From Epithemia pelagica (taxonomy: Eukaryota; Protista; Bacillariophyta): 64,000 nt of DNA. Position 1 is the first letter of the stretch, and every line of letters begins with the position of its first letter. Of this stretch, positions 590 to 60,028 are shown piece after piece. Below the pieces are notes generated by a model. It did no database searches. It was not told the DNA's origin and was given only the letters and a program-made list of their open reading frames with translations. The translations under genes and the position numbers were made by a program. The stretch lies in assembly GCA_946965045.2 (NCBI GenBank), contig OX337241.1, positions 1 to 64,000 of the forward strand, in the 5' to 3' direction.

Positions 590-1068
590 TGGTTGGGACG
601 GGATCCCAATCCCATCGGGCGTGGGGTGGGGGGTGCTGATTTTAGATCGGCTTAAATAAAATCCCGCCTACACGGAAAATGTCGGCGCGCTCTATAATGG
701 CCTCTCCGACTCTAACCTAAAAAGTACAAAAAATTGACCAGAATTGACCATCGCCAGAATAGGATCTTCTACAGACTTTTCGCTTTCCCGCCAAAAAAGC
801 AAAAATCTAGCGCTAGTAGCTTTATGAGCCAATGAACAAGTATGGCCATATTGAATATGACCACTTGAGAAGTAAATAGAGGGCATAGGTAAATTCCTGG
901 CTCAATCGCAACGGGGGTTATGAAAAATTGCAGCTCATCTGCAAAATGAGCATAACAAATTTGCTCATATGCAACAAAGCACTGTAGGATATTCTGCTCA
1001 TATGCACACGTTCAAATCCTACGGTCTCTAGTACTAAAACATGCCAAAAAAGGGGAAAATACTTAGGG

Positions 1069-1597
1069 CATTCTCCAACGTGCCAGGAATCATATTACTC
1101 AGTACATCGGGCCACCTTCCCAAAGTGTCGCTTGGATGCAATAATGGTTCAATCGAACTTGCAAACTCGTTGGGTAACCTGCTGCAGGGCGGCGGCATGG
1201 TGAATATTGAATTCTCAACTTGAATTATTGGGGTCCAGTTGGTTTCTTGCTGCATGGTTTCTCTTTGGGGCCTTGGCATGAAGCATCCACACTTCAGCTT
1301 GAGGAAAGTCTTGGCAATGACTTTGGCACTAGCGCAACAACCAGCAACGTGCTTCTCGCACAAAAGCTTCACATGAAACATCTTGTCACAGTCACTACAG
1401 AAATACTTGATTCTTGTATCATTTGACTCATGAATGAAACAATCAAACGGTTGGTTGTTGGCATTCTCCACAAGAGTGTGTATTTTGTTACCAAGATGTC
1501 TCCCAGGAAAGCGAAAGGACACCCCATGAATTTTGGAGCAGGTCTTGGCGTGGCGGGCAAGACACTTCATGTTTGCTCAGAAACCACCACCACAGAG
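1069..1597 (-). pseudogene. Truncated, diverged duplicate of the 5' part (zinc-finger region) of the subtelomeric gene at 1488-3503
   Basis: Colinear with 2912-3440 (same 1843-bp offset at both ends). Near-identical telomere-proximally, more diverged distally. ORF 1034-1570 translates to a paralog of the zinc-finger region (MKCLARHAKTCS...LSNMIPGTLEN). Confidence 0.9.
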
Positions 1598-3503
1598 CTT
1601 GTGGAAAAAATCTCCTTGTATTGGGCCCATTCCAAACTTTCAGCACCACAACTCTGTAGAGAAATAGACACCTTGCTATGATCCGAGGCATCTTGTGTTC
1701 AACGGGGGGTCGATCATAAGCTTGCAGTTTGGGTTGTTTACGACTCGGTGCAGAAACATATAAATCTTGGTAGTTTGTATTTTTCCACCGAAGCTGAGTC
1801 ACATCGAGACAATGGACCTCTGAGAACCGATCTGCACCACAGCCAAAACCATGGATGGCAAATTCCATCAAGGCAGTTAGTCGTTCGAACTGACTTTTCA
1901 CCAGTTCCTTGCATTCCAAATCTTGTGTGTTGGTACCATCTGGCAGCGATCCCAAACCCTTGGACCACTCCACAATAGTCAAGTCACCATCTAAGCAGAG
2001 GAATTTCTCGTATGCCTTTCCGACAAAGCATGCATCAAAAATACCGTGGGCCTTTTCCACAACCGTAGGAACGACCTTAGACCAATGTGCTTTTTGGAAT
2101 GCATGTCCATCAACAATGATATTGAAGAACTCATCGACCACAACCTCCCTTTTAGGAGGCTTCTCTTGATATTGCTTCCTCAAAGAATAAATCTTAGGAC
2201 AGAGAAAGTGTATTGTAGGACAATGTCTGTACCGTTCCATGACCTGCTCGACCAACTTGCCCTGCCCATCATAGTATTTTAAGCCAGCCGCAACCCCACA
2301 GCGAAGCAGATGTAAAAGGTCAGCTAGAAAGAGATGAAAGAAGACATGAGATTTGAACAACCAAGTATATTCATTGACAGGGGGAAAGGGGGACTCACCG
2401 AGTTCTTGAGCGGCAACTCCACATGATTTCAACCTCAAGCCATTCTTCGTCTTAGTGAACAACCTCTGCCGAGAGAACAGTAACACTACCCCTGAGTTGG
2501 ACCAACAAGAAATCTCACTGTCGAGTACCAACTCTGTCAGGAGTGACCCAAGAACACAATTTTGGAATGCAGTGTCCACAGAGAATCCATCACCTTCAAC
2601 CTGGCGGCAAAAATAGTTCCATCTCTTCCACTGCCTCTGATGCAGGAAACACAAGAGAGAGAGGAGTAGAGGTTTCACTCGTTTGTCATAATCATGTCGA
2701 TGGCTGAAATTCCATGAGTGATCCACATCACCATCATGGAAAGCAAACTTAGCAATCCGACTCCGAATGTCTGCTGGAATCCCCATTACGATCGAAGCCA
2801 TCCTGTCCAGAAGGTAACAACCAACCTGATAGAGTCGGTTGATTGCAGTGTTATTTCCTCTCTTATGATACTCGGCTTCAAACATAATTCCTTGTTCAAT
2901 GTCTCCAAGGACATTCTCCAACGTGCCAGGAATCATATTACTCAGTACATCGGGCCACCTTCCCAAAGTGTCGCTTGGATGCAATAATGGTTCAATCGAA
3001 CTTGCAAACTCGTTGGGTAACCTGCTGCAGGGCAGCGGCATGGTAAATGTTGAATTCTCAACTTGAATTATTGGGGTCCAGTTGGTTTCTTGCTGCATGG
3101 TTTCTCTTTGGGGCCTTGGCATGAAGCATCCACACTTCAGCTTGTGGAAGGTCTTCGGAATCACTTCAGCATTGTTGCAACAACCAGCAGTGTGCTTCTC
3201 GCACAAAAGCTTCTTGTGAAACATCTTGTCACAGTGACCACAGAAATACTTGATATCTGTTTCCTTGGACTCGTGTATGAAACAATCAAACGGTTGGTTG
3301 TTGGCATTCTCCACCAAGTCGTGTATCTTTTTTCCAAGATGTCTTCCAGGGAACCGAAATGACACTGCATGAACCTCAGAGCAAGTCTTGGCGTGACGAG
3401 CAAGGCACTTCATGTTTGCTCGGAAACCAACACCACAGAGTTTACAGACCAAGCCACAGGGTGTGGCAAAGTCCACAAGCCCCAAGTAATCGTCAAACTC
3501 CAT
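1488..3503 (-). CDS. Subtelomeric zinc-finger protein with a putative tyrosine-recombinase-like region, resembling the N-terminal half of fungal telomere-linked helicase proteins; C-terminus truncated near 1600
   Basis: Long ORF, first ATG at 3503. Cys/His clusters CKLC...HAKTC and CGHC...HTAGC. Motifs IHGFGCGADRFSEV and HKMPRIIARCLFLYRVVV. A 75-nt GTGAGT...TCTAG intron (2324-2398) is in frame and gives AAQELADLLHLLRCG when spliced. The last ~35 codons come from the duplicated copy read in another frame. Confidence 0.7.
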   Translation of the reverse strand: MEFDDYLGLVDFATPCGLVCKLCGVGFRANMKCLARHAKTCSEVHAVSFRFPGRHLGKKIHDLVENANNQPFDCFIHESKETDIKYFCGHCDKMFHKKLLCEKHTAGCCNNAEVIPKTFHKLKCGCFMPRPQRETMQQETNWTPIIQVENSTFTMPLPCSRLPNEFASSIEPLLHPSDTLGRWPDVLSNMIPGTLENVLGDIEQGIMFEAEYHKRGNNTAINRLYQVGCYLLDRMASIVMGIPADIRSRIAKFAFHDGDVDHSWNFSHRHDYDKRVKPLLLSLLCFLHQRQWKRWNYFCRQVEGDGFSVDTAFQNCVLGSLLTELVLDSEISCWSNSGVVLLFSRQRLFTKTKNGLRLKSCGVAAQELGESPFPPVNEYTWLFKSHVFFHLFLADLLHLLRCGVAAGLKYYDGQGKLVEQVMERYRHCPTIHFLCPKIYSLRKQYQEKPPKREVVVDEFFNIIVDGHAFQKAHWSKVVPTVVEKAHGIFDACFVGKAYEKFLCLDGDLTIVEWSKGLGSLPDGTNTQDLECKELVKSQFERLTALMEFAIHGFGCGADRFSEVHCLDVTQLRWKNTNYQDLYVSAPSRKQPKLQAYDRPPVEHKMPRIIARCLFLYRVVVLKVWNGPNTRRFFPQALWWWFLSKHEVSCPPRQDLLQNSWGVLSLSWETSW

Positions 3504-3570: not shown

Positions 3571-4182
3571 GGCCCTAAAGAGGGTCATTCACCTCAAAAA
3601 CTGAAAAGGCCCTAAAGAGGGTCATTCACCTCAAAAACTGAAAAGGCCCTAACACCAGAGATCATTCACCTCAAAATCTTTGAGCGACAAGAAGGAATAT
3701 GGTTTACTATGGAGAGTTAATGTAGGTTCTGAAATCGACCTTTTTCCGGTCGAAATCGACCTTTTTCCGGTCGCACTAAATATAGCACGCAGCAATACAG
3801 TGATTTGAAATCGACCTTTTTCCGGTCGCGCATGTGATTCTACAGAGTGAACTTAGTGCGCACCGGAAAAAGGTCAATTCCTAGCAAAACTATTAGGGTC
3901 ATTCACCTCAAAAACTGAAAAGGCCCTAACACCAGAGATCATTCACCTCAAAATCTTTGAGCGACAAGAAGGAATATGGTTTACTATGGAGAGTTAATGT
4001 AGGTTCTGAAATCGACCTTTTTCCGGTCGAAATCGACCTTTTTCCGGTCGCACTAAATATAGCACGCAGCAATACAGTGATTTGAAATCGACCTTTTTCC
4101 GGTCGCGCATGTGATTCTACAGAGTGAACTTAGTGCGCACCGGAAAAAGGTCAATTCCTAGCAAAACTATTAGGGCCTTTTC
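3571..4182. repeat. Subtelomeric repeat block: 37-bp tandem units, then two 277-bp tandem copies, with internal GAAATCGACCTTTTTCCGGTCG repeats and a 13-bp inverted repeat GAAAAGGCCCTAA/TTAGGGCCTTTTC
   Basis: Direct reading: 3621-3898 repeats at 3898-4175. GGCCCTAAAGAGGGTCATTCACC recurs at 3571 and 3608. Inverted-repeat arms at 3917-3929 and 4170-4182. Confidence 0.9.
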
Positions 4183-14222: not shown

Positions 14223-16922
14223 GTAGCTAACCACACGACCTTCCAACCGTCTCGACCGACGCACACCACCGACCGGCTGTGAGTCGTCAGCCTGGTCTAT
14301 TCGAGCCTCAATGTGTTCCCCTTCTGCTTCCGCCTGCTCATTGTCAGTAGCTGATGGAGGAGCCATAGTCGAAGGAGCATTCATGGAAGACTCTGTCTCA
14401 TCAAGTTCTTTCGCCATCTTTTGAAAGTCCTCTTGAGCTGCATCCAGACGAAGCTGGGTGAAGCGCAACGCTGTTTGTAGGGATGTGTTTTCTGCTGACA
14501 GCGATTCAAGCTGCAGCTCAAAGCGGCTTTCTGATTCAAGCAATTTGCTTCTTGTTCGCTCGTAACTTTCAAAGGACAAACGCGCTTGCTCGTTACTTTC
14601 CTGGAGCTTCTGCTGCAGGGCTGATCTTTCGTTCTTAAGAGCTGATATCGCGGCACCAAGCTCCTGTTCTCGTACTTTGCCTTCACTTTCCGAGATTTCC
14701 AGCAATTGCTTCGCATTTGCTGACTCCTTCCGTGATAACTCGAGCAAATCATGGAGAGAGATCACTTGATCAGCCCGCTCCTTGCACTCATCCTTAATTG
14801 CGTAAAGCTTCCCATTGACGATTTCAATCTTGTCTGTCAATTTTGCAACATTCCCTTCTAGTTTTGATTTCCCTTCCTCAAGGGTTACAATTTTTTCCAT
14901 GAGTGCCCTGGCCTCGACAAGTTTGGTTTCTAAGTCTTGTTCGCACTTTGTTGTGGATTCTTTAAGTTGCCTGTTTTCCTCTAAGACTTGGTTTTTCAAC
15001 GTGGATTCTTTGTCGAGCGACAACACGACTGCTTCATGTTCATCTCGATAATGGGAGCATTCCTCCTTGGTTTCTTGAAGTTGAGATTCTAACTTCTTGA
15101 TCGAGTCCATCTTCTGCTGCACCACAAGCGTGTGATCATCTTTTTGACATTTCAGTTGAGTTCTTGCCTCGGCTAATTCTACATGCAACAAGTCGTTCGC
15201 AATGCTGAGTCGATCAGCCTTCTTCACAAATTTACGTTTCGTCATTTCAAGCGCATCATGATGTTCCTTAGACATTTTTTGCATCCTCTCCTCATAGGAT
15301 GAAATCTGTTCATGAGCTTTGGCATGGTCTGTCAACACCCGATCGCGTTCCATTGAAAGTGATTTGTTGTCAACTTTGAGATTTTTATTCTCGACTTCAA
15401 GAAGTGAAAATCGAGACTGAAGATCGTTGTACGCTGATGTGTTTTGGTCCAATTCACTTCGCAAAGCGTCGCGGCACGAAATTGCCTCGAGGACATCAGA
15501 TTCGGACTTCTCCTGGTGGTGTTGAAGTTCCTCCTTGGTTTCTTGAAGTTGAGATTCTAACTTCTTGATCGACTCCAAATTGTGCTGCACCACAAGCGTG
15601 TGATCATCTTTTTGACATTTCAGTTGAGTTCTTGCCTCGGCTAATTCTACATGCAACGAGTCGTTCTCAATGCTGAGTCGATCAGCCTTCTCCACAAATT
15701 TACGTTTCGTCATTTCAAGCGCATCATGATGTTCCTTAGACATTTTTTGCATCCTCTCCTCATAGGATGAAATCTGTTCATGAGCTTTGGCATGGTCTGT
15801 CAACACCCGATCGCGTTCCATTGAAAGTGATTTGTTGTCAACTTTGAGATTTTTATTCTCGACTTCAAGCAGTGAAAATCGAGACTGAAGATCGTTGTAC
15901 GCTGATGTGTTTCGGTCCAGTTCATTTCGCAAAGCGTCACGGCACGACATTGCCTCGAGGACAGCAGATTCGGACTTCTCCTGGTGATGTTGGAGTTCTT
16001 CCTTTGTTTTGTAATATAGCTCTTGAGCAGCCTCTGCTTTCTGTGCTTGGTAGCAGGCTTCATGTTTTGCATCTGCTAGGCTTTTTTCCAATGTGGCTAT
16101 TTTCATGTTACAGTCCTTCATTTGTTGTTCGACGTGTTCCTGTTCCTCTCTTTCATTAGCGATGACACCACGTGCTTCTATAATGAACCCTGTAATTCTC
16201 GCGACTTGACTCATTATGTCCCTTATGTTCTTTCGATAACCAAGTTCATCCAGTCGACCTTCCGACGTTTCAGTATCTGAACCGAGGATTCTACTGCAAA
16301 CAGACTGGTCTCGGCCCTCGCCCGATCTCGTTAGATGAGAAACTTCCTCTTCACAAACCACAAGTTTTCGCGAGATCTCCGAAAGCGCATCATTCAGATA
16401 CTCTGTCAACCGATGTGCTTTTTCTTTGAGAAATTCCACTTCGAACGAAAGAACCGAGTTGCCTTCAATAACGTCTCGCCTTTTTTCATGTGCCGCTTCC
16501 AGTTCTACCACAAGGCTTGCATTACGGCAAGCAAGTTCTGCTGCTTCTGGATGGTGGCTGTTGGTTCCGTCGTTGTGGCTAGAACGGGCATTGCTGTTGT
16601 TGTTGGTTCCGAGGCCACTGCCACACTTGTCGTCGTCGTTGTTGGTGGTGCAAAGGGTTGGACGGTCGTCGTTTCGGGAGGCGGTACCGATGCGGTCTCC
16701 TACTCGTTCGCGTTCGTGTGTAGAATCAGAAATGGGTGGCGGTGGTTCCGTCGTAGTGTTTGTCCGATCTTCTTTGATTTGTTTGGCCAAGGAGGGTTGC
16801 ATGGTGGCCGGTGGTTGAGTTGGTTTCTCGTGATTCCACGGGCGCTTCTTGGAGGCAGACGCTCGTGGAACCGCGTTGCTTGTCGGTGGCGGAGTGCCGT
16901 TGACGTTCTCCTCCTTGTTCAT
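14214..16922 (-). CDS. Long coiled-coil protein with a 156-aa internal tandem duplication
   Basis: ~902-aa ORF from ATG 16922, Glu/Lys/Leu heptads throughout, intronless. Confidence 0.8.
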   Translation of the reverse strand: MNKEENVNGTPPPTSNAVPRASASKKRPWNHEKPTQPPATMQPSLAKQIKEDRTNTTTEPPPPISDSTHERERVGDRIGTASRNDDRPTLCTTNNDDDKCGSGLGTNNNSNARSSHNDGTNSHHPEAAELACRNASLVVELEAAHEKRRDVIEGNSVLSFEVEFLKEKAHRLTEYLNDALSEISRKLVVCEEEVSHLTRSGEGRDQSVCSRILGSDTETSEGRLDELGYRKNIRDIMSQVARITGFIIEARGVIANEREEQEHVEQQMKDCNMKIATLEKSLADAKHEACYQAQKAEAAQELYYKTKEELQHHQEKSESAVLEAMSCRDALRNELDRNTSAYNDLQSRFSLLEVENKNLKVDNKSLSMERDRVLTDHAKAHEQISSYEERMQKMSKEHHDALEMTKRKFVEKADRLSIENDSLHVELAEARTQLKCQKDDHTLVVQHNLESIKKLESQLQETKEELQHHQEKSESDVLEAISCRDALRSELDQNTSAYNDLQSRFSLLEVENKNLKVDNKSLSMERDRVLTDHAKAHEQISSYEERMQKMSKEHHDALEMTKRKFVKKADRLSIANDLLHVELAEARTQLKCQKDDHTLVVQQKMDSIKKLESQLQETKEECSHYRDEHEAVVLSLDKESTLKNQVLEENRQLKESTTKCEQDLETKLVEARALMEKIVTLEEGKSKLEGNVAKLTDKIEIVNGKLYAIKDECKERADQVISLHDLLELSRKESANAKQLLEISESEGKVREQELGAAISALKNERSALQQKLQESNEQARLSFESYERTRSKLLESESRFELQLESLSAENTSLQTALRFTQLRLDAAQEDFQKMAKELDETESSMNAPSTMAPPSATDNEQAEAEGEHIEARIDQADDSQPVGGVRRSRRLEGRVVSYRD
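15063..15998. repeat. Two near-identical 468-bp in-frame tandem copies inside the coiled-coil gene
   Basis: 15063-15530 vs 15531-15998. The protein repeats KEELQHHQEKSES...KKLESQLQET. Confidence 0.95.
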
Positions 16923-47396: not shown

Positions 47397-48118
47397 AGAC
47401 AGCAGAAAAGTTAAGTATTATAATCGGATTATTGTATCGGTTACGTAGCCCTTAAGCCTAGAAACTAGAAAGTAGAAAGTGCGCCTGATAACTGATAATA
47501 TATAATATCCTTTGAAAACAGCTGGGATGACCATCAATCTTCAGCGTGTGAAGCTGCTTTGAGACTGAGACGGATCTACCCAGAGAAATAGCTCTGGAGA
47601 GGAAAGGTCAATTCTCAACTGGAAACTTAGAACTAGCACTAAGTATGATCTGAATTGTCGATCCAGTCGTCTTTCGATCCTCTAGGGTTTCAGGTTTTCC
47701 AGATTCTATGATCAATTCTCAGTCCCACTTCTTGCCGAGTGACGAGTGACCATTGATTCTAGGACTAAGGACTACCAATACTTGTGCCGAAAGTGCTCCG
47801 TCCCGTAATGAAACGTCAAAGTCACCTAATAACTAATAAAAGAAAAAGACAGGCCCTATGCGAATTGGGATTTTCGTCTCGGTTTCGGTTCTCTTATTCG
47901 ATAGACGAGAGTTAAAACCTTTCCAGTTTGCCATAATTTGAGTCATGTGTGTGCGTGGGTCCCGAGCCCCTGAGCTACCTCTCCGCCTCGACACTCGCAT
48001 AATCTGACGGACTACTGCGTAGTGTTCCTGCTGCCTCTCTCTATGTCCATGGCAACAACAACAACAACAAGCATAAAAAGCTTTTCAAGGACTCTATATT
48101 TCTGGAATGGTTGCTCTA
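47397..48118 (+). repeat. Duplicated segment A (upstream region between the TPR-like gene and CHMP1); second copy at 57644-58369
   Basis: 47397-47826 reads identical to 57644-58073. The remainder aligns with substitutions and indels up to GTTGCTCTA. Confidence 0.95.
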
Positions 48119-48355
48119 TTAACCACACCCAGTTTTTTGGTCGCTTTCAGTCGCATAAGAACTGACCCCATCTGCATTCCCACGCCTGTCAGCACCCCAT
48201 GCTGCCGCTCCAGGCACGTGTCAAGGCACGTGTATCAACTGTCCCCTCTTCCAACGGTCTCCCGAAGAAAATCACCTACTACCTTTGTACTTGCATGTTG
48301 CATGAGATGGGCCAAAAAACCCACTCTCATAGCCTTTCCTTCCTTTTCCAACACT

Positions 48356-48696
48356 CTCTCCTACTACCCTTGATAACTTTCTACATGTAAGTCGGATTTC
48401 AACATTGAATGGCTCGTTGGAAAGCCCTTTGCAAGACCGTTCTAACAATACCTTGTTTGGTTTGATTGCGTTGGTCCTTCAGAAGCGATTTGATTTTGAA
48501 ATTTGGGGTCTTTTTGGTGGCTGCTCCAGCACCCTCTCCTACTACCCTTGATAACTTTCTACATGTAAGTCGGATTTCAACATTGAATGGCTCGTTGGAA
48601 AGCCCTTTGCAAGACCGTTCTAACAATACCTTGTTTGGTTTGATTGCGTTGGTCCTTCAGAAGCGATTTGATTTTGAAATTTGGGGTCTTTTTGGT
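48356..48696. repeat. Tandem duplication with 178-bp period near the left end of the MULE
   Basis: 48356-48518 repeats at 48534-48696. Confidence 0.9.
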
Positions 48697-48814
48697 TGTC
48701 TACATCAGGATTTGTCATGGGTGATGTCCAAGGAAGCCCTCAAGGGAGGTCGTTTAGAACCAGACCATAATGGTCAGGCTCTCACCGCCCAGTGCTTAGG
48801 CAGTACATCTTCAA

Positions 48815-50010
48815 ATGTACATGCCAACAAAAGTACGGGGGGGGGGGCTTGCACGGAGATTAACTCAGGATGAGATTCTGCAGAACATAGCTGAAGAACA
48901 TACAGGCTTTGATGTTACTAATGCTTTTCATGTGTTCAAGTCCAATAAACCATGTTCTCAAAGGACACAAGTTGCTGCTTTGGTTGCCAAAGCATCTTCC
49001 ATGCCAAGGTCTTCTGCACAACGATATCGCCGGAATAAGAAGAGACAAAAGCAGGAAGACGCATTGAAAGAGATTACCGAAGCACCTGATTCTTTGAAGA
49101 TTTCTTCTTCTATTCTACACAAGTTCTGCCTAGTCTTCACAAATGACCCTACCGATGGTCCGCTGGAGCTATCCAAATGCACTCCAAATGTCCCCCACCC
49201 TGTTTCCTTGTCAAGCTGGAAAGTAATTGGAGAGTCTGGTGACCAAGGAAGTATCTTTCGTCCAGATAAACAGAAACTACCTGTGTTTCTCAAACCGCCA
49301 CGTCAAATTCTAACAAGTGATAATGTGACACAGAACCTACTTGATGTTCTTGAGAAGTTGGAGACAACATGCAACCATCAATCACGTGGCAAGTCACGTT
49401 ATGTCGGATGTGATGAACACAAGACAAACTACATCACTCTTGGTGTCCATGCAAATCGGGGAAGAAAAGGGCTGGTAGATTCAAAGTTTTCTAAGTTGAA
49501 AGCAAAGGAGAAACGGGTAATCTTACAATTCATCAAACAGCTTGAGACACAGCTGGAAAAATGGATTGACTGGTCTTATTCTTTTGCGTTCGAGAACTCT
49601 GCAAGAAATGGTGAATTCAAGTTGTGGTCCCACAAGGGGAAAGTACACATTTCTTCTCCTCTGTTGCGTTCGGACGAAACGTTTTCCTTCAAGCCCATAC
49701 AGACAACGACTTTGGTCTGTCCATTTCTGTCGTCATGCTTGTGGAACCAAGTAACAAAGACAAGGATGAAGTTTTGGCTCAATTTGTCTTCCCAGAACAT
49801 GGACAAGTTGTGGCGTTACGACACCTCGACATCATCATTTTCAATCCTCTTGAGTACCATTGTGTCTCCAAGAGGGCAACCAAACATGAAATCTTTTGTC
49901 TGACATGCTATTTGAAGACTGCAGTGGTGGGTAAGAACGACAACACAATTCCTATCACGGACAATGAAAAAGCAATTTTGGCAGCTGCCAAGAACAAAAC
50001 TAGTCATTAA
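48815..50010 (+). CDS. TET/JBP-like Fe(II)-dependent dioxygenase, split by one frameshift at the G4 run 49636-49639
   Basis: Adding one G joins ORF 48815 (...FKLWSHKG) to ORF 49624 (ESTHFFSSVAFGRNVFLQAHTDNDF...FVFPEHGQVVALRHLDIIIFNPLEYHCVS...CLTCYLK). HxD at 49696-49704 and distal His at 49858-49860 sit in a double-stranded beta-helix pattern. Start codon uncertain. Confidence 0.72.
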
Positions 50011-50076
50011 AGTAAACCATATGTTGCATAAACAAACGCTAAATATTGTTTAGATCTGTTATAGGAGTTTTACAAT

Positions 50077-53000
50077 CTAGGTGAAAGACGTCAGACCTAA
50101 TGTGGCACCACGGAAACGACGTTTATGCTGGGTTTGTTCAGCATTTGCCGAAACCCATTCCTGACCTTGGTTGTGATGTCCCCGTTCTGCCATTTTCCGG
50201 CGTATGTCTCGACGTAGTTGGCGAAATGACTCAAGATGGGATAAAAGATTGTGATCAGAAGCGACATAGTTACCAGACCGGAAAAGATCCTGTAGTTCTG
50301 AAACCTCTTCGCGAATACATGAAATGAATTGTTGTGTTGTCATTTGCTCCCCAGCTTCTTCTTCAATTGCCTGCAGGAAAATTTCATTCTCCTCACTCTC
50401 CTGGGTGGAGAAATGCGCGTCGTACGTGCCTTGGCCATCTGTGTCATAGTCTTCTTTTTCTTCTGGAAACGAAGGAAATGCTGGCATTTGGGTTGTATAA
50501 GCATTGTTTGTGATGTCATCATTTGTGACAAAACATTCTTGGGACAGATATCCAGGATCGGGACATATCTCCCTTTCCCTTGTTGTTGTTGTTGCTGCTG
50601 TTGCATTTGAGACAAGACTTCCTCTAAATGTATTGATAGCACGCAGTATTTGATCTTCTGTATAGTTGACACAACTACTTTTTGGATCAACGTGCAGATG
50701 TTTGAATTTGATGGGATTGTCTCCCGTGTTGTACGGGCCTTCTGTCCAGCCATCTATATTTTGAAGGGGAAGGGGAAATTTAGGTCCCGATATGTCGTTG
50801 TCCAGCAAGTGCTGGATGCACTCATCAACATTGTTATTCCCGTCACGGAGACCAAGGAAGACATGTTTCTTCCACCACACAATACTCACATCATGGTGGG
50901 TAAATCCTTTGTAGCTAGGATACTCGTGCATAAGCACAGCTGCTTGGTGAGCACATGGTATCCCGCGTCGTTCAAAAGACATACAGGTGCACTCCAGGCG
51001 TCCCATTTTGTTCAGATGTACACATCGAGTGCGATGCCACACAGGAAGCAAATGTTTTTTTTTCATTGTTGACAATAGAGGGGTCGCTTATAACAACGTG
51101 CCATTGCCATGGAGAAAAGGGGACAGGTGCACGACGGACACTATAGTTCTTCCCAAAATTCCATGATTTTGTTGCCAGATCAAGACACAATTCTGTGACA
51201 AAACCGTTGACTGGGAGGTGGTTTGTCCAGGTGGCCGTTGCTTCTACACTCGAGGACGCACAACGCATCTGTTCATCAATGGCCATGTCAGACTGGAGCT
51301 TGAGCATAGCTGCATTGAATGCAACAGTTCTGTTGGCCAACACTGGTGCAGAATGTTCCTTTAAGCCAAGATTTGTGCCTTCATGACTGCTGTTTGTCGA
51401 TTCTTCATAATAGCGGATTCCTTTACGATAATGGAAGCACAAGTGCCTGTTGTGAACAAAGACATAGCCAATAAGAAAGTTGTGGATAACTTTCCGGAGC
51501 TGGGGGGTCAAGAAAGTGCGAACAGGCCTGGAGTAAACAAAGGCAAGAAGAAGACATTTTGAGATATGGAGTTCCTGTTCACTTTCACAGTAGCGTGGAT
51601 ACATGAATGAGTAACACCACTTCTTTACAGTGGTTGCAAATTGCCGGTATGTGCGTTTGTATTCCCATGGAATTGCTCCCTCAATGGAGCACTGCCTACT
51701 CCAACCCTTGAAAATGATATGCCAGCCACAACGGATTCTGATGCAGTGTGGCATGTATCGACGCATCGATTCTTCCAATTCTTCAATTTCATGGGAGTCT
51801 CCATCAGTTACTATGGCCTTGACCCGTGCTATCCATTGTGTTCCAAGAAGAGTCGGGAAAGCAATGCAGAAAACCCATCGAAATGTTGTTCTTCTCTCAT
51901 TGGATAGAAACATTTGCATGATGACAAGATATTTTCCATAGGCCGTGCGCATTGACACAGTCATTAAGGGGCGGTTTTCTCTATTTGTTCCTTTGGTGAC
52001 ATCAATCTTCAGTGCATGCGGAAACAGTCGAAACATTCGCCGCTCTTTATTCGTGATCCAAGCACAAGCAATGAACATATTCTGGTCAACATCAAGTTTC
52101 AGATTTTCCATTTCAGTAGTATATTCATGGAGGATCTCTTGACAAAAGTGAGTCAAGTCTGAAACACTGTGGTTCCCATCTTTGTCTTTGTTCTCATTGA
52201 AGATTTACCCTGACTGCCGTTCCATATGAGCATCGGTAACACTGTCTGGGCGCGCTCCCCAAATGCAGTAGCTTAAACTTTCAGCAGTACGAAGCCATTC
52301 AACTACGGCTTCTGCAGATGCACGTATTCCATCAAAGTGGTACATTCCTGTTGTGTCAGTTACACAAAAAGCATATCGCATTTGATCACGAGTAATGGTC
52401 AAATTGCCATTTGCGTGGAAGTAGTTGCGACCAGCCGCTGGTCCTGTAAATGCATTACCAAGTTCACCCGCACGTTTGCGTTGTTGAGCAGTAAAGTTCC
52501 TAATGCAAAATGGAATGTCAGATGACATCTTCTTCATGTGGTTGCAGTGACATGCATTCCCGGCGACTCTGGTGATATAGAAACCTTTGGAATTGGCAAA
52601 GACCGTGAAATGAAAAGAGCAAGTATGATCACGATGTAGTGCTCGGTTGGTGATGCGTTTACGCGCTTGTTTCCTACCCTCCGGTCCTCGACTATTAGCT
52701 CGTTGATCGTTGTGCAGAGAAATGCCACGGTATTGCTGAATGGAAGGTTCATCACTTGCTTTACGCTTTTGGTAGACTCTGTAACGTTCACATCGAAAGG
52801 TTCTTGAAAAAAAGGGAGGGGAACTTCCTTCAGGGAAGTGTTTACGGGAAGCAAGCGAAGAATTCTTGGTGGAGTTACCGTTGCTCACAAGAACAAAACC
52901 GGATGTTAAAGATTTTGTAACTAAATCTTGGTGAAGATTTGCCATTGAATTGCCTTCCTTTGAGAGTTCATCTGCAGATTGGAGAGGAGGGTATGTGCTA

Positions 53001-53395
53001 CAATCAAAGTATGCGTACTTGCCCTTGATGCCATTCGCTGCTTGTAGTCGGCCAAAGAAGGCACAAATGTCCAGTTCTACAGTTGTGTCACTGTTGGCAC
53101 AATTGTTGCCTACATGCATTTGGAATTGAAGTGGCGAGTGCCATTCTTTGTCCAATGATGCAAAGAGATCATCCAGGTATTGTTGTGTTAGATCTTGGAT
53201 AGGAACCAGGTTATCCTCAGATAGGGGCTGAGCGTCATTGTCCACCATGATAGGATGCAAACTATGTGACGGTTTTTGAACTGGAAATGGATTTGAATTT
53301 GTCCAGCGCGGGGTGGCCAATTTTATGGTCACGATGAAAGCGTGTTGTTTGTCTATATATCCAATGCTCTTTGGAATACATAGGCGACTAGTCAT
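50077..53395 (-). pseudogene. MULE transposase with N-terminal FAR1/WRKY-GCM-like zinc domain, DDE core and SWIM finger; one in-frame stop (52205-52207) and one frameshift (A9 run, 51055-51063)
   Basis: TCSFHFTVF...GNACHCNH, KIDVTKGTNRENRPL, IVTDGD, RCGWHII, STNSSHEG, SWIM CTCMSFERRGIPCAH. ORFs 52205- and 50972-52156 are in the same frame across a single TAA. Confidence 0.88.
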
Positions 53396-53481
53396 TGGCC
53401 GGGGGGCGTGCGTGATTGGAAGGGTACCCGGAGTTTTAAAAGGAAATGGGATTGAAAAACTGGGTGTGTTTAATCGGGAGT

Positions 53482-53817
53482 AGATCCGTCCGCTTCGACA
53501 GCTATTTTTCGCGCTATCCAGTCTACCTCTTCCGCAAATACGCCAAGGCGTCCTTGATGATCCAGAATCATGGTTCGATTTCGAAAGGAAATGTGTGTGG
53601 ACGAGAGGAATTTGCACGACTCGGAAGAACGACCAACGAGTCCCACAAACGAAGGCCAATCGCTCGCGATTCTTCTCGCATTGCTCTCTCAACGCCAACA
53701 ACAACAACAACCAACGACGACAACGACGTCGCCTACTTGAACCTACCCAACAAAAGAAAAGAAGCAGTCAAGCAACAACAACAACAGTCATCATGGGAAA
53801 CAAAGTGAGCTTGGAAG
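53482..53817 (+). repeat. Duplicated segment B: CHMP1 upstream/5' UTR region plus first 8 codons; native copy at 58567-58911
   Basis: Sequence ends in ATGGGAAACAAAGTGAGCTTGGAAG in both places. The distal ~290 bp read identical. Confidence 0.95.
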
Positions 53818-55413: not shown

Positions 55414-56786
55414 ATGTGACAGCTATGATATTGAAAAAGAAAATACTTTTAAGGTTGTGAGGAGTGAGGAGGTTTCCAGGAGCCACCGAGAGAAGGAAAT
55501 CTCGGATTTTAGCTTTGAGCATTCTGTTAGAATCGTCAGAAAACGGCGCATTGCGCTATCAAAAATGCGCATTTGTAGCATTATTTTTTTAAAAAATAGC
55601 GCAAAAGCTGGTATTTTTAATTTTACATATATTTTATGGGCGTGATTGTATTTTTTGCCTAAATTGGGTAGACCAGTTGTTTTCATCTGCTATTTCGTTT
55701 ATGGATAATAACGCGCTTGTGGTAGCGATGGGACGGACACGGCGGGGGTTTGAGATGGGCATTTTGCGCTGTGTTGTGCATATTAACGCGCAAGCAAAGC
55801 AAGGCGCAACGCATACACATCTCTGCTCTTTTTTTTTTCCTGGCTCGTAACTCCCATCTCGAACCAAACTCTGCTTAAGAGGAACAATGAACACTGCAAT
55901 ACAACGTTCAAGAAAGCAAGAATCTTTTGATTTTGATGAGCGCGACACGTCCCAAGAAAAATATCACTTCACAATGCTGCACGATGCATTGATGTAAGGT
56001 TGTGTAGCAACTCATTTATCCGTAAGGGGCGTGTGTCATTCTACTTCGTGGACGTCTTATTTTACCTCGTGGTGTGATCCTGCGGTTGTTGTCTCCATTG
56101 TTTGCCAAAATCATTCTATTGTTGAGTCCAGATGTCGCTTGAGTGTTCATCTGACTATTCCACACGCAAAGCCTTGCATCTTCTCCAGCTGTCAGGAAGG
56201 TTGACGACGACAGTCTACTCCAAGAACGAACAACGCCTTTATGGCCACCACTAAGATGGTAGACTGGCTCGATGTCGGTTTCTCCTACCTGGAAAGGGCT
56301 TTTTCCACACTTTGTGCTTCGAAATTCCGTTGTGAAAAACTTCGATTATGGAGTGATGATTAAGACTGCGCGTGCATGGAAAAACCCATATTCGAAGTTC
56401 CTCCGAAATGGAATCTTGGTGTTTCAACTTCGATTTTGAGGAACTTCGAGTTTGATCATTAAGACAGCCTCTTAGTCCAATGGAGAATGCAAACGGTGCA
56501 TCACGCACGGAATTGAAAATGTAGTCTGTCCCTCTGATCGGTTTCAGAAAAATTGGTCCATCCAAAAATGGACAAAACATGAGCTGTGAACGCAGTGCAA
56601 TTTTTTTTTGCACATTGCACACGTACCGTATGGACAGTAATGGATAAACTTATCCCATTTCAAACAGTCATCACCGGTTTTCATCCAAAGACAAGCGTTG
56701 CATCGGATCGCCAGTCAAGTCAGGACTATTTTGACGAGGGAAATTGGGTTTTATGTGTTTCAACAACTAAGAGATGGATTGGTTGT

Positions 56787-57225
56787 GCAATGGATGTAGG
56801 TCCGCTGGTGGGTCCAGAGCTTGGGCTTGAAGTTGGACTCGACGTTGGACCGGAACTTGGAGCAGATGTGGGACCAGAGGTAGGCCCACTGGTAGGTCCT
56901 GATGTAGGAAGAGATGTTGGTCCACCGGTTGGTCCGGATGTTGGGCGACTTGTAGGTCCAGATGTTGGTCCAGATGTTGGCTCAGATGTTGGACCAGAAG
57001 TAGGTCCACTTGTGGGTCCCGATGTGGGTCCACTAGTAGGGCCAGATGTTGGGCCAGTTGTTGGTCCGGACGTAGGTTCACTTGTTGGACCACTTGTTGG
57101 GCCAGATGTTGGGCCACTGGTAGGTCCAGATGTAGGACCGCTGGTAGGTCCACTAGTAGGGCCAGAGGTAGGTTCACTGGTTGGGCCAGATGTAGGTCCA
57201 CTTGTAGGTCCGTCAGTAGGACCAC
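56787..57225 (-). repeat. 12-bp coding-type tandem repeat translating to (GPTS)n, a fragment of a PT-repeat extracellular protein
   Basis: About 36 units with wobble-position variation, which indicates protein-coding origin on the minus strand. No native N-terminus. Confidence 0.8.
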
Positions 57226-57643
57226 GATTGGAAGCAATGCCTTTTCGCACAGCAAAGCTCTAGCCAAGCTGAAACTTCCTTCAACTTTGCGAGAGATTTC
57301 GGAAAATGTCTTTTTCGAGTGCCTTGGTCTAACTTCAATTGACCTTCCAGTGGGTCTCCAAATGATTGGCGAATATGCGTTCTACAGCACAGGCTTACAG
57401 TCTCTAGAAGTCCCTCCTACGGTAAACAAAATAGGAGGAGGTGCGCTTTCAATGTGTCACAATTTGGAATCCATTGTGCTTCCACCAAAACTCCAAGTGA
57501 TTGAGCACAACCTTTTCTATGCTTGCCGCAAATTAGAAGAGATCAAGATTCCGGAAACAATAAAGGCCATTGGGTATTATGCTTTCTGTGGATGCTGGGT
57601 GTTGGAAAATTTGGATTTTTCGCTTTGTACTGTATGCATGACA
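57221..57643 (+). pseudogene. Fragment of a BspA-type (LRR_5) leucine-rich repeat gene, truncated at both ends
   Basis: TIGSNAFSHSKALAKLKLPSTLREISENVFFECLGLTSIDLPVGLQMIGEYAF...IPETIKAIGYYAFCGC. Bounded by the PT repeat on the left and duplicated segment A on the right. Confidence 0.85.
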
Positions 57644-58369
57644 AGACAGCAGAAAAGTTAAGTATTATAATCGGATTATTGTATCGGTTACGTAGCCCTT
57701 AAGCCTAGAAACTAGAAAGTAGAAAGTGCGCCTGATAACTGATAATATATAATATCCTTTGAAAACAGCTGGGATGACCATCAATCTTCAGCGTGTGAAG
57801 CTGCTTTGAGACTGAGACGGATCTACCCAGAGAAATAGCTCTGGAGAGGAAAGGTCAATTCTCAACTGGAAACTTAGAACTAGCACTAAGTATGATCTGA
57901 ATTGTCGATCCAGTCGTCTTTCGATCCTCTAGGGTTTCAGGTTTTCCAGATTCTATGATCAATTCTCAGTCCCACTTCTTGCCGAGTGACGAGTGACCAT
58001 TGATTCTAGGACTAAGGACTACCAATACTTGTGCCGAAAGTGCTCCGTCCCGTAATGAAACGTCAAAGTCACCCAATAAAAGAAAAAGACAATCCGTTTG
58101 CACCTTAGGCCTTGTTAGGCCCTATGCGAATTGGGATTTTCGTCTCGGTTCTCGAAGAGAGTTAAGAGTTTGCAGTTTGCCATTATTTGAGTCATGTGTG
58201 TGCGTGGGTCCCGAGCCCCTGAGCTACCTCTCCACCTCGACATTCGCATAATCTGACGGACTACTGCGTAGTGTTCCTGCTGCCTCTCTCTATGTCCATG
58301 GCAACAACAACAACAACAACAAGCATAAAAAGCTTTTCAAGGACTCTATATTCTGGAATGGTTGCTCTA
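57644..58369 (+). repeat. Duplicated segment A, second copy
   Basis: Matches 47397-48118. Confidence 0.95.
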
Positions 58370-58886
58370 GAAGTGCTTCTCGATTCTTGCTGGATGTCTC
58401 TTTCTTCAATTAATAACCAATCCAGAATGACCCTCACATCAGACACAACTCTGCTATTAGGAGGGAGTCATGATGCACTGGAAGACTTGTTCCTGGGGCT
58501 TTGGAATACTTTGACAGTGCTACTGGTGTGGCACATTGGGTGGTTGTCAGAGATTGAGAGCGAGGGAGATCCGTCCGCTTCGATTGCTATTTTTCGCGCT
58601 ATCCAGTCTACCTCATCCGCAAATACCGCAAATACGCCAAGGCGTCCTTGATGATCCAGAATCATGGTTCGATTTCGAAAGGAAATGTGTGTGGACGAGA
58701 GGAATTTGCACGACTCGGAAGAACGACCAACGAGTCCCACAAACGAAGGCCAATCGCTCGCGATTCTTCTCGCATTGCTCTCTCAACGCCAACAACAACA
58801 ACAACCAACGACGACAACGACGTCGCCTACTTGAACCTACCCAACAAAAGAAAAGAAGCAGTCAAGCAACAACAACAACAGTCATC

Positions 58887-60028
58887 ATGGGAAACAAAGT
58901 GAGCTTGGAAGAGAATATGATTGAATTGCGTTTGGTTTCCAAACAAATGGTAGGTCAAGTCGTTGTGGCTTGTGGCGCTGTTGTCGCTTTTGGTCGGTCG
59001 CAAGTCGTGCTTCTTCTTTATTTGAAATCGTTGTTGGTTTGAAGCAGAAAGAAAGGAGATATAATCGCCATGAGTGAGGAATCTTCCCCAATCAAGGACT
59101 TGTGGTCGTTTTTCATTGGCCTTTCTCGCTCTCTAGTGACTGACCATTCTATTTCTTTTCCTGAATTGTGCGCGTTTGGTTTGCCCCTTTCTGGCATTGC
59201 GACGTACCTTTCTTGGTGATACACCACTTTGGATCCGAAATGGTTAGGTTCGTTCTTCGAAAAAGTGCGAAAAGAATGAAAAGGCGGCCTTGGAAAAATT
59301 GAAAAAGGCGATTCAACAGGGCAATCACGAAGGGGCTCGCATTTATGGACAAGATGCCATTCGCGAAAAGAATCAGGCCCTCAATCATTTGCGCATGGCC
59401 AGTCGATTGGACGCCTGTTGCTCACGGATTGAAACTGCTGTGCGCATGAATCAAGTCTCGTCGGGTATGAAGGGTGTCGTCAAGGGAATGGACAAGTCCC
59501 TGGCCTCCATGAATATTGATCAATTGTCGGCCGTCATGGACAAATTTGAAGCCCAATTTGAAGATTTGGATGTCAAGGTATGTAGTTTGAGTATGGGTGA
59601 AGGTTGTGTTTGCTCTACTTTTGCGGATTTGGGACCAATGCTCACGTCACGGCTGCTATCTCGAATTTGTCGCTCCATTTCTGCTCTCATTGCACTGAAT
59701 TGTGTGCTGCCATATCTCTTGGATCCTTGTTGGCACTCGACACAACTATCTTCCTGATTCGACTGCTACCTCTACTGTAACTACTTTTGATTCAAAACAG
59801 ACGCAATATATGGAGGGTGCCATGAATGCGACAACAGCCACGTCCACTCCGGCCGAACAAGTGGACAGTTTAATCAATCGCGTTGCCGATGAAAACAATT
59901 TGGAATTGGGCGAAGCCTTTTCGCAAGCAGGACCTGTGGGCAAAAAGACACCGGAAATCTCTCAAAAAGAACCGGCCAAACCCGAAACGGAAGATTTGGA
60001 AGCCCGATTGGCCAATTTGCGATCGTAA
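58887..60028 (+). CDS. CHMP1: ESCRT-III protein CHMP1/Did2/Vps46; exons 58887-58949, 59248-59577, 59801-60028
   Basis: GT-AG introns join in frame. ARIYGQDAIREKNQALNHLRMASRLDA, MDKFEAQFEDLDV, STPAEQVDSLI, and C-terminal MIM DLEARLANLRS. Confidence 0.95.

Follow-up and report, generated by a model that had tools for sequence, protein, structure and literature searches.

A degraded Mutator-type transposon in the diatom Epithemia pelagica pairs a transposase gene with a gene for a predicted TET/JBP-fold dioxygenase

The first 64,000 nucleotides of contig OX337241.1 of the diatom Epithemia pelagica (GenBank assembly GCA_946965045.2; forward strand, positions 1 to 64,000, hereafter the window) contain a discrete insertion of 5,364 bp at 48118-53481. 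Between short inverted ends, the insertion holds two genes arranged tail-to-tail. The minus-strand gene encodes a transposase of the Mutator-like element (MULE) superfamily, and the plus-strand gene encodes a protein whose predicted fold is that of the TET/JBP dioxygenases. Both genes are broken in the window. Related copies, of which L001 and L003 are named below, lie elsewhere in the genome. The features of the locus are as follows.

48118 to 48137, plus strand: left terminal inverted repeat, ATTAACCACACCCAGTTTTT, the start of the element in the window copy; homology to a paralogous copy of the flank ends exactly at 48118, and homology to copy L003 begins at 48118.
48347 to 48696, no strand assigned: tandem array of a 178-bp unit, 2.0 units, between the left end and the TET-like gene.
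48724 to 50010, plus strand: TET/JBP-fold dioxygenase gene, a pseudogene here; an intact, 96%-identical protein (P0002) is encoded by copy L001.
50011 to 50076, no strand assigned: spacer of 66 bp between the two convergent stop codons.
50077 to 53251, minus strand: MULE transposase gene, a pseudogene here, with an RNaseH-like DDE core and a SWIM zinc finger, recognised from Pfam matches and by comparison with the intact 1177-codon open reading frame (ORF) of L003.
53455 to 53481, minus strand: right terminal inverted repeat (53455-53474) and conserved terminal CGGGAGT (53475-53481); the paralogous flank resumes at 53482.
57644 to 58911, plus strand: paralogous copy of both flanks without the element, with 197 unrelated bp (58370-58566) in its place; the junction is also present as a contig in sequencing runs X1-X3.

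The limits of the element follow from the duplicated flanks. The left flank (47397-48118, 722 bp) matches 57644-58369 at 93% identity and the right flank (53482-53817, 336 bp) matches 58567-58911 at 97%, about 1.07 kb in total with the duplicate some 10 kb downstream; the 197 unrelated bp stand there in place of the 5.36-kb unit, which therefore begins at 48118 and ends at 53481. The two inverted ends are complementary at 19 of 20 nt (48118-48137 against 53455-53474), and the pattern has no other occurrence in the 64 kb, where 0.01 matches would be expected by chance. An initial annotation of the window had recognised a unit bounded by terminal inverted repeats and closed it at 53474; the bounded unit stands, and its right limit moves 7 nt outwards to 53481, because CGGGAGT is present in every other copy and so belongs to the element. 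The outermost 7 nt of the left end vary between copies and, in L001 and L004, complete a 27-nt inverted repeat with 2 mismatches. Terminal inverted repeats thus lie at the limits of the unit, as in the MULE superfamily, and these limits coincide in six copies, although the repeats are short compared with those of MuDR.

At the window locus, the left end seems to be truncated along with 197 bp of host DNA. On the simplest reading, the element would have inserted next to AGATCCGTC, and a later deletion would have taken away its left tip together with the left duplicate and some 190 bp of host DNA. The 197 bp at 58370-58566 may have arisen as filler DNA or may be ancestral sequence that the filled site has lost. 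A joint from 48118 to 53482 in read contigs was considered as an independent empty allele and rejected; it is the paralogous flank and carries the T>A of the paralogue at 53530.

The transposase is encoded in the window by three consecutive minus-strand ORF pieces. Three Pfam families match above their cut-offs, namely PF10551 (MULE; 35.7 bits, cut-off 27.6), PF21056 (ZSWIM1-3 RNaseH-like; 46 bits, cut-off 27.2), and PF04434 (SWIM; 24.9 bits, cut-off 19.6), the last in ORF 50077-51075, C-terminal to the catalytic core, which bears out the minus-strand MULE DDE/SWIM transposase of the initial annotation. The intact protein, as encoded by L003, has about 1056 residues. Two lesions break the window gene: an in-frame TAA in place of TTA at 52205-52207 and an additional nucleotide in a T-run near 51055; read contigs have variants at both places (52206 and 51055). 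In other assemblies, related transposases with 31-49% identity have the same domains and are likewise accompanied by a convergent second gene. At L009 (329-8980, ENA ERZ23491984 scaffold_1355), a MULE transposase 49% identical to that of the diatom element faces a convergent gene of 1081 aa without a Pfam match, and a SET-domain gene (E 6e-7) further on recalls the SET-carrying MuDR of Phytophthora discussed below.

The TET-like gene consists in the window of two overlapping plus-strand ORF pieces. It had been given a start at 48815 and a single frameshift; comparison with intact copies places the start at 48724 and reveals two frameshifts, a run of eleven G instead of seven at 48836-48846 and the loss of 1 nt in a run at about 49636-49642. 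The peptide FSSVAFGRNVFLQAHTDNDF...FVFPEHG...LRHLDIIIFNPLEYH on which the earlier assignment was based is present in plus-strand ORF 49624-50010, as is the HxD...H facial triad for iron that was read from it, encoded at about 49690-49860. The convergent layout with the transposase, whose stop codon lies at 50077-50079 and that of the TET-like gene at 50008-50010, was also described correctly, save that the gap is 66 bp rather than 67.

The intact protein has about 427 residues and belongs to a large family. An exhaustive HMMER search at E<=1e-3 finds 621 clusters (50% identity), 333 of them at E<=1e-10; one member is a Cyclotella protein. A word-index protein search with the TET-like protein returns matches only from the copies of the same genome. 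All 70 members of an alignment have H324 and H378, at least 90% have D326, and D326, D328, R192, R220, S381, Y395, and K397 are nearly invariant; all of H324, D326, and H378 are invariant in the 12 closest relatives. Conserved motifs of the family are HTDxD(F/Y), FNPxEPHxxSS(R/K), and YLKTAVVGxNDN. In run X4, a subsurface metatranscriptome, one contig of 151 nt aligns to 49425-49573 of the gene with 2 differences. Its source may be RNA of a near-identical environmental element or carried-over DNA, and it is too little to use.

Five further copies of the element (L001, L002, L003, L004, and L012) were found through the clusters of P0002 and of the transposase P0186 in assembly ENA ERZ21939226. 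Together with the window copy they represent four independent genomic sites, each with the array and the two convergent genes inside the same ends, so that the co-occurrence of both genes inside one pair of ends, proposed as a check by the initial annotation, is found repeatedly. L002, on another contig, is the window locus: the two are collinear for over 13 kb (97.6-99.3% identity), and L002 is, to judge from this match, a haplotig or a very recent duplicate. L001 (6442-13171) and L004 (7296-13255) lie on the same 1.19-Mb contig and have about 300 bp of flank in common on each side; either the element sits inside another repeat or it was copied by a 6.7-kb segmental duplication. L003 and L012 have flanks of their own, and L012 has lost 1.1 kb across both gene ends. 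The 178-bp array varies from 2.0 units in the window to 6.0 in L003 and 6.7 in L001, with 98% identity within each of the L001 and L003 arrays. The state of the genes in these five copies is given below.

L001: TET-like gene intact; transposase with a 1-nt insertion, an in-frame 24-nt deletion, and a TGA stop.
L002: TET-like gene with the same 1-nt loss as the window; transposase with the same TAA stop and a 1-nt deletion.
L003: TET-like gene intact; transposase intact.
L004: TET-like gene with an 8-nt deletion; transposase with a stop near the C-terminus.
L012: 3' end of the TET-like gene deleted; 3' end of the transposase deleted.

The 1-nt loss and the TAA stop of the window copy are real mutations rather than assembly errors, since both are common to L002. 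With both genes broken, the window copy can therefore at most be mobilised in trans and is unable to perform any activity proposed for the enzyme. L003 is the only candidate autonomous copy. The autonomous form of the family that it exemplifies has two convergent genes between inverted ends of 20-27 nt and a variable 178-bp array upstream of the TET-like gene.

Structure prediction assigns the product of the second gene to the TET/JBP-like fold. An AlphaFold2 model built from the 70-sequence alignment reaches a predicted local distance difference test score (pLDDT) of 86.4 and a predicted template-modelling score of 0.86; a single-sequence model, with a pLDDT of 35, was not used. In a Foldseek search of the PDB, the first 26 matches are all CcTet, CMD1, TET2, and NgTET1 (E 1e-8 to 7e-6), followed by Tpa1, FTO, and AlkB homologues at about 1e-5. 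VIA-align gives Z scores of 18.1 for TET2 (281 residues), 15.8 for CMD1, 15.0 for CcTet, and 14.9 for NgTET1, against 11.5 for FTO and about 10.5 for AlkB-type oxygenases, and its top 16 PDB entries are all TET/JBP-type folds. Among the Swiss-Prot models, the first 17 matches are JBP2, JBP1, and NgTet1 (16 annotated as JBP or Tet) together with Cif1 of S. pombe. The best structural matches are hence TET/JBP proteins in all three comparisons and not an oxygenase that acts on something other than nucleic acids, the outcome that had been named as fatal to the assignment. Cluster names in AFDB are JBP1/TET or Tet-like oxygenase, with one KDZ-transposase-associated protein, and neighbours in the Atlas are diatom hypothetical proteins and then basidiomycete clusters with PF12851 or PF20515. 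What the diatom protein has in common with TET2, NgTET1, CcTet, CMD1, and JBP1/2 is the HxD...H site and the overall fold, which aligns over about 230-290 residues (Z 14-18); its identity to them is only 9-13%.

Comparison of copies shows purifying selection on both genes between element lineages. When L003 is set against the other lineages, 14 synonymous and 9-15 non-synonymous differences in the TET-like gene give a ratio of non-synonymous to synonymous rates (dN/dS) of 0.18-0.31 (Fisher p 6e-5 to 2e-3); for the transposase the ratio is 0.26-0.39 (p 3e-5 to 3e-3). These low values between lineages imply that the enzyme gene was kept by selection during the diversification of the family, to the same degree as the transposase. 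Within same-locus pairs, the transposase ratio is 0.77-0.84, near neutral, as expected after insertion; the TET-like gene has only 6-9 differences in these pairs (0/6 synonymous for the window and L002; a ratio of 0.57 for L001 and L004), which are uninformative.

The copies also bear a methylation signature. The six copies contain 186 minority substitutions, 90 of which are C>T or G>A, and 54 of these 90 fall at a consensus CpG, although consensus CpG makes up 7% of positions; some changes are common to same-locus pairs and so are counted twice, which leaves the proportion unaffected. The observed/expected CpG ratio is 0.70 in the element, compared with about 1.0 in three host ORFs of the window. 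An excess of CpG-to-TpG change is the footprint of 5-methylcytosine (5mC) deamination and points to copies that are, or were, methylated at CpG. In a model diatom, methylation is restricted to transposons (PMC12344493).

Relatives of the enzyme lie beside transposon genes in environmental DNA, in answer to the question raised by the initial annotation of whether homologues are ever transposon-linked; links to Helitrons, to Plavaka elements, and to one MULE were found. A metagenome survey yields 260 stretches that encode enzyme relatives, and 64 large neighbouring ORFs were examined at the best 80 loci (L013-L092). Among these 64 ORFs are 8-9 Helitron Rep/helicases and 4 Plavaka transposases. 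Locus L060 (843-6025, JGI Ga0208177_1000264) carries a TET-like gene, an unannotated ORF of 764 aa, and a convergent C-terminal fragment of a MULE transposase that is cut by the contig end; the fragment belongs to the same MULE clade as the transposase of the diatom element, with 34% identity across the SWIM region, and L060 may represent a second organism with the MULE and TET pairing. L006 (2536-9881, JGI Ga0210366_10000122, the same contig as L013) has a 1589-aa Helitron Rep/PIF1-helicase ORF, followed on the same strand by a 626-aa TET-like member that is 34% identical to the diatom protein, and is a candidate for a TET-carrying Helitron outside fungi. Three of the 64 neighbouring ORFs have ubiquitin C-terminal hydrolase (UCH) peptidase domains.

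The window element is probably a decayed copy of a low-copy MULE family of a raphid pennate diatom whose TET-like enzyme counters silencing. The enzyme would oxidise 5mC, or another methylated pyrimidine, on the DNA of the element itself; this oxidation would counter methylation-based silencing and might thereby keep the transposase and the enzyme itself expressed, by analogy with what is proposed for fungal TET-carrying DNA transposons. The anti-silencing or self-marking activity put forward by the initial annotation is, as such, purely a matter of inference.

Several observations weigh against the view of a MULE with an active, silencing-opposed TET enzyme. The description of the element as a canonical MULE is upheld as to its type, while the hallmark target-site duplication of 8-11 bp is not found: none of the four independent sites has a direct repeat of >=8 bp under the several boundary choices tried, and a 5/6 match of 6 nt in the flanks of L003 and L012, seen by eye with a boundary chosen post hoc, may be chance. 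Membership of the protein in the Pfam Tet families stays below threshold. PF20515 (Tet-like) reaches 14.9 bits, below the cut-off of 27, and then only with a C-terminal fragment, since the full-length intact protein has no Pfam match; PF12851 is touched by only 2 of the 70 relatives, at E 0.002; and a profile search against PDB sequences finds nothing relevant. The CpG decay cuts both ways, as it shows that the copies were methylated anyway, so that any protection was at best partial. The TET-like gene is intact in only 2 of the 6 copies and the transposase in only 1 of 6. RNA runs of the organism were sought and none was found, and runs X1-X3, in which the element occurs, appear to be DNA sequence from the same organism. 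The closest transposase relatives (L009-L011) have no TET-like gene; the second genes that converge with them show no relationship to the TET family or among themselves, so the TET gene is an acquisition of the lineage of the diatom element.

A further point of the same kind concerns the co-substrate pocket. TET2 R1261/R1896 and NgTET1 R224/R289 hold the C1/C5 carboxylates of 2-oxoglutarate, whereas the diatom protein has no obvious counterpart of R1896/R289, and in alignments the canonical arginine for the C5 carboxylate is not evident at its usual place. Conserved candidate substitutes are R/K383, five positions after the distal histidine, Y395-x-K397 at the end of the last strand, and R365 before the distal histidine. 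CMD1 has an aligned arginine that points away from the pocket (Li et al. 2021), and its co-substrate is vitamin C rather than 2-oxoglutarate (PMC7854593).

This pocket bears on a reading in which the enzyme is a base hypermodifier instead of an eraser, hydroxylating thymine as JBP does or placing an adduct on 5mC as CMD1 does, and so marking DNA to alter transcription, repair, or recognition while cytosine is not restored. Such a role is conceivable but rather unlikely. By structure, the best matches in Swiss-Prot are JBP2 and JBP1, and CMD1 takes second place in both structure searches of the PDB. The usual 2-oxoglutarate-binding arginine is not evident, CMD1 uses another co-substrate, and Kojima 2025 (PMC12730594) leaves the option open for divergent transposon TETs. 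Against these stand the highest Z score, which belongs to TET2, and the CpG decay, which shows the TET substrate 5mC on the element; moreover, the element contains no glycosyltransferase or other partner gene. It seems improbable that the second gene is instead a direct helper of transposition that opens methylated donor or target DNA, for example, and regulates no expression. The model for such a helper is the mudrB of maize MuDR, which converges with mudrA between inverted ends in a layout like that of the diatom element. MuDR has ends of about 200 bp and 9-bp target duplications, in contrast to the 20-27 nt of the diatom element, at which no duplication is seen. Transposase relatives too have a convergent second gene, of different kinds, and constraint on the two genes of the diatom element is similar. 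The same enzyme family accompanies Helitrons and Plavaka elements, however, whose transposition chemistry is different, and this argues for a function that does not depend on the type of transposase.

Little probability likewise attaches to the gene being a passenger captured from the host, as in a Pack-MULE, that brings the element no benefit, or to a substrate that is RNA or protein instead of DNA. Inactivation in 4 of 6 copies, the lack of RNA evidence for expression in the runs found, and the very low identity (9-13%) to proven TETs would all be expected of a passenger. A gene without function for the element would hardly match the transposase in constraint between lineages (dN/dS 0.18-0.31), retain an invariant catalytic triad across 70 relatives, or associate recurrently with three transposon superfamilies, and the nearest folds are all DNA-base enzymes.

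The closest known systems are the TET-carrying transposons of fungi. TET/JBP genes reportedly occur in fungal KDZ elements, in work attributed to Iyer and colleagues. Kojima 2025 (PMC12730594) describes TET-carrying transposons in 11 carrier lineages from three fungal groups, with no MuDR and no non-fungal host among them, and proposes escape from silencing through 5mC oxidation. The diatom element resembles these transposons in being a DNA transposon with a TET/JBP-fold dioxygenase as a second gene, inside the ends in several copies, in the intact state of the gene in active lineages, and in the proposed escape from methylation silencing. In both settings the enzyme family moves between superfamilies, with homologues of the diatom enzyme adjoining Helitron and Plavaka genes. 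The host is a diatom, however, and the carrier a MuDR/MULE element outside the 11 described lineages; the diatom protein is also very divergent, its sole Pfam trace being PF20515, which in Atlas clusters is mostly from Basidiomycota. No description of a TET/JBP pairing with MuDR, or with a transposon of a diatom or alga, was found in the full-text literature (Iyer et al. 2014 on non-fungal hosts lies outside this comparison), in line with the initial annotation, which knew of no pairing of a MULE and a TET gene in diatoms.

Mutator-type elements with other cargo offer a second comparison. The VANDAL elements of Arabidopsis, with their VANC protein, are the closest analogue in function within the Mutator superfamily; they have tandem repeats in their non-coding parts, and so does the diatom element. 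Their VANC protein is not an oxygenase and acts through sequence-specific binding, unlike the diatom candidate, which is an enzyme with a predicted TET/JBP fold. The likeness is that a Mutator-superfamily element encodes its own factor against DNA-methylation silencing, as a passage in Kojima 2025 indicates (PMC12730594). A passage of the same paper also refers to SET-carrying MuDR in Phytophthora, a stramenopile like the diatom, where the cargo is thus a chromatin-modifier gene (PMC12730594). Unlike the cargo of these elements and of MuDR, that of the diatom element would, by its fold, act on DNA bases and not on histones, and appears not to be MURB.

The pairing extends TET/JBP-carrying transposons, taken to be fungal, to a diatom host and a Mutator-type carrier. 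Diatoms are major marine primary producers, and their cytosine methylation lies mainly on transposons. Purifying selection on the gene of the enzyme, methylation decay, and Helitron- and Plavaka-linked homologues suggest that countering silencing by DNA-base oxidation recurs across eukaryotes. With its 621 clusters at 50% identity, the family also constitutes a large unannotated branch of the TET/JBP fold, one whose co-substrate pocket seems unusual and which deserves biochemical study, and it gives a concrete reason to seek oxidised methylcytosines in diatom DNA.

A more far-reaching version of the silencing-escape reading can be entertained only tentatively and, taken as a whole, is doubtful. 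In analogy to VANC, the enzyme might be recruited to the 178-bp array and thus form a self-contained, sequence-targeted system of epigenetic escape. At the array it would remove CpG methylation or else introduce a base modification new to diatoms, with a co-substrate that is possibly not 2-oxoglutarate given the arginine not evident in its pocket, and in aquatic protists the enzyme family would have passed among MULE, Helitron, and Plavaka elements. If this were true, transposon-borne DNA-base oxidation would be a general eukaryotic strategy and not a fungal peculiarity.

The remainder of the window contains a host gene next to the element and several repeats. The neighbouring gene encodes a Sec7 protein whose best match, at 62%, is from Epithemia clementina; entries from Amphora-like diatoms, Nitzschia, Bacillariaceae, and Pseudo-nitzschia come next, as expected of a raphid pennate host. 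A 12-nt unit forms two long arrays, at 1-650 and 56784-57236; several reading frames stay open through the second, which would encode repeats of the (GPDV)n or (GPTS)n kind. Local direct repeats lie in 3618-4171, 15060-15827, and 1065-3207, and comprise a perfect 277-bp tandem pair, a 300-nt pair 468 bp apart with 98% identity, and a 300-nt pair 1.8 kb apart with 94%.

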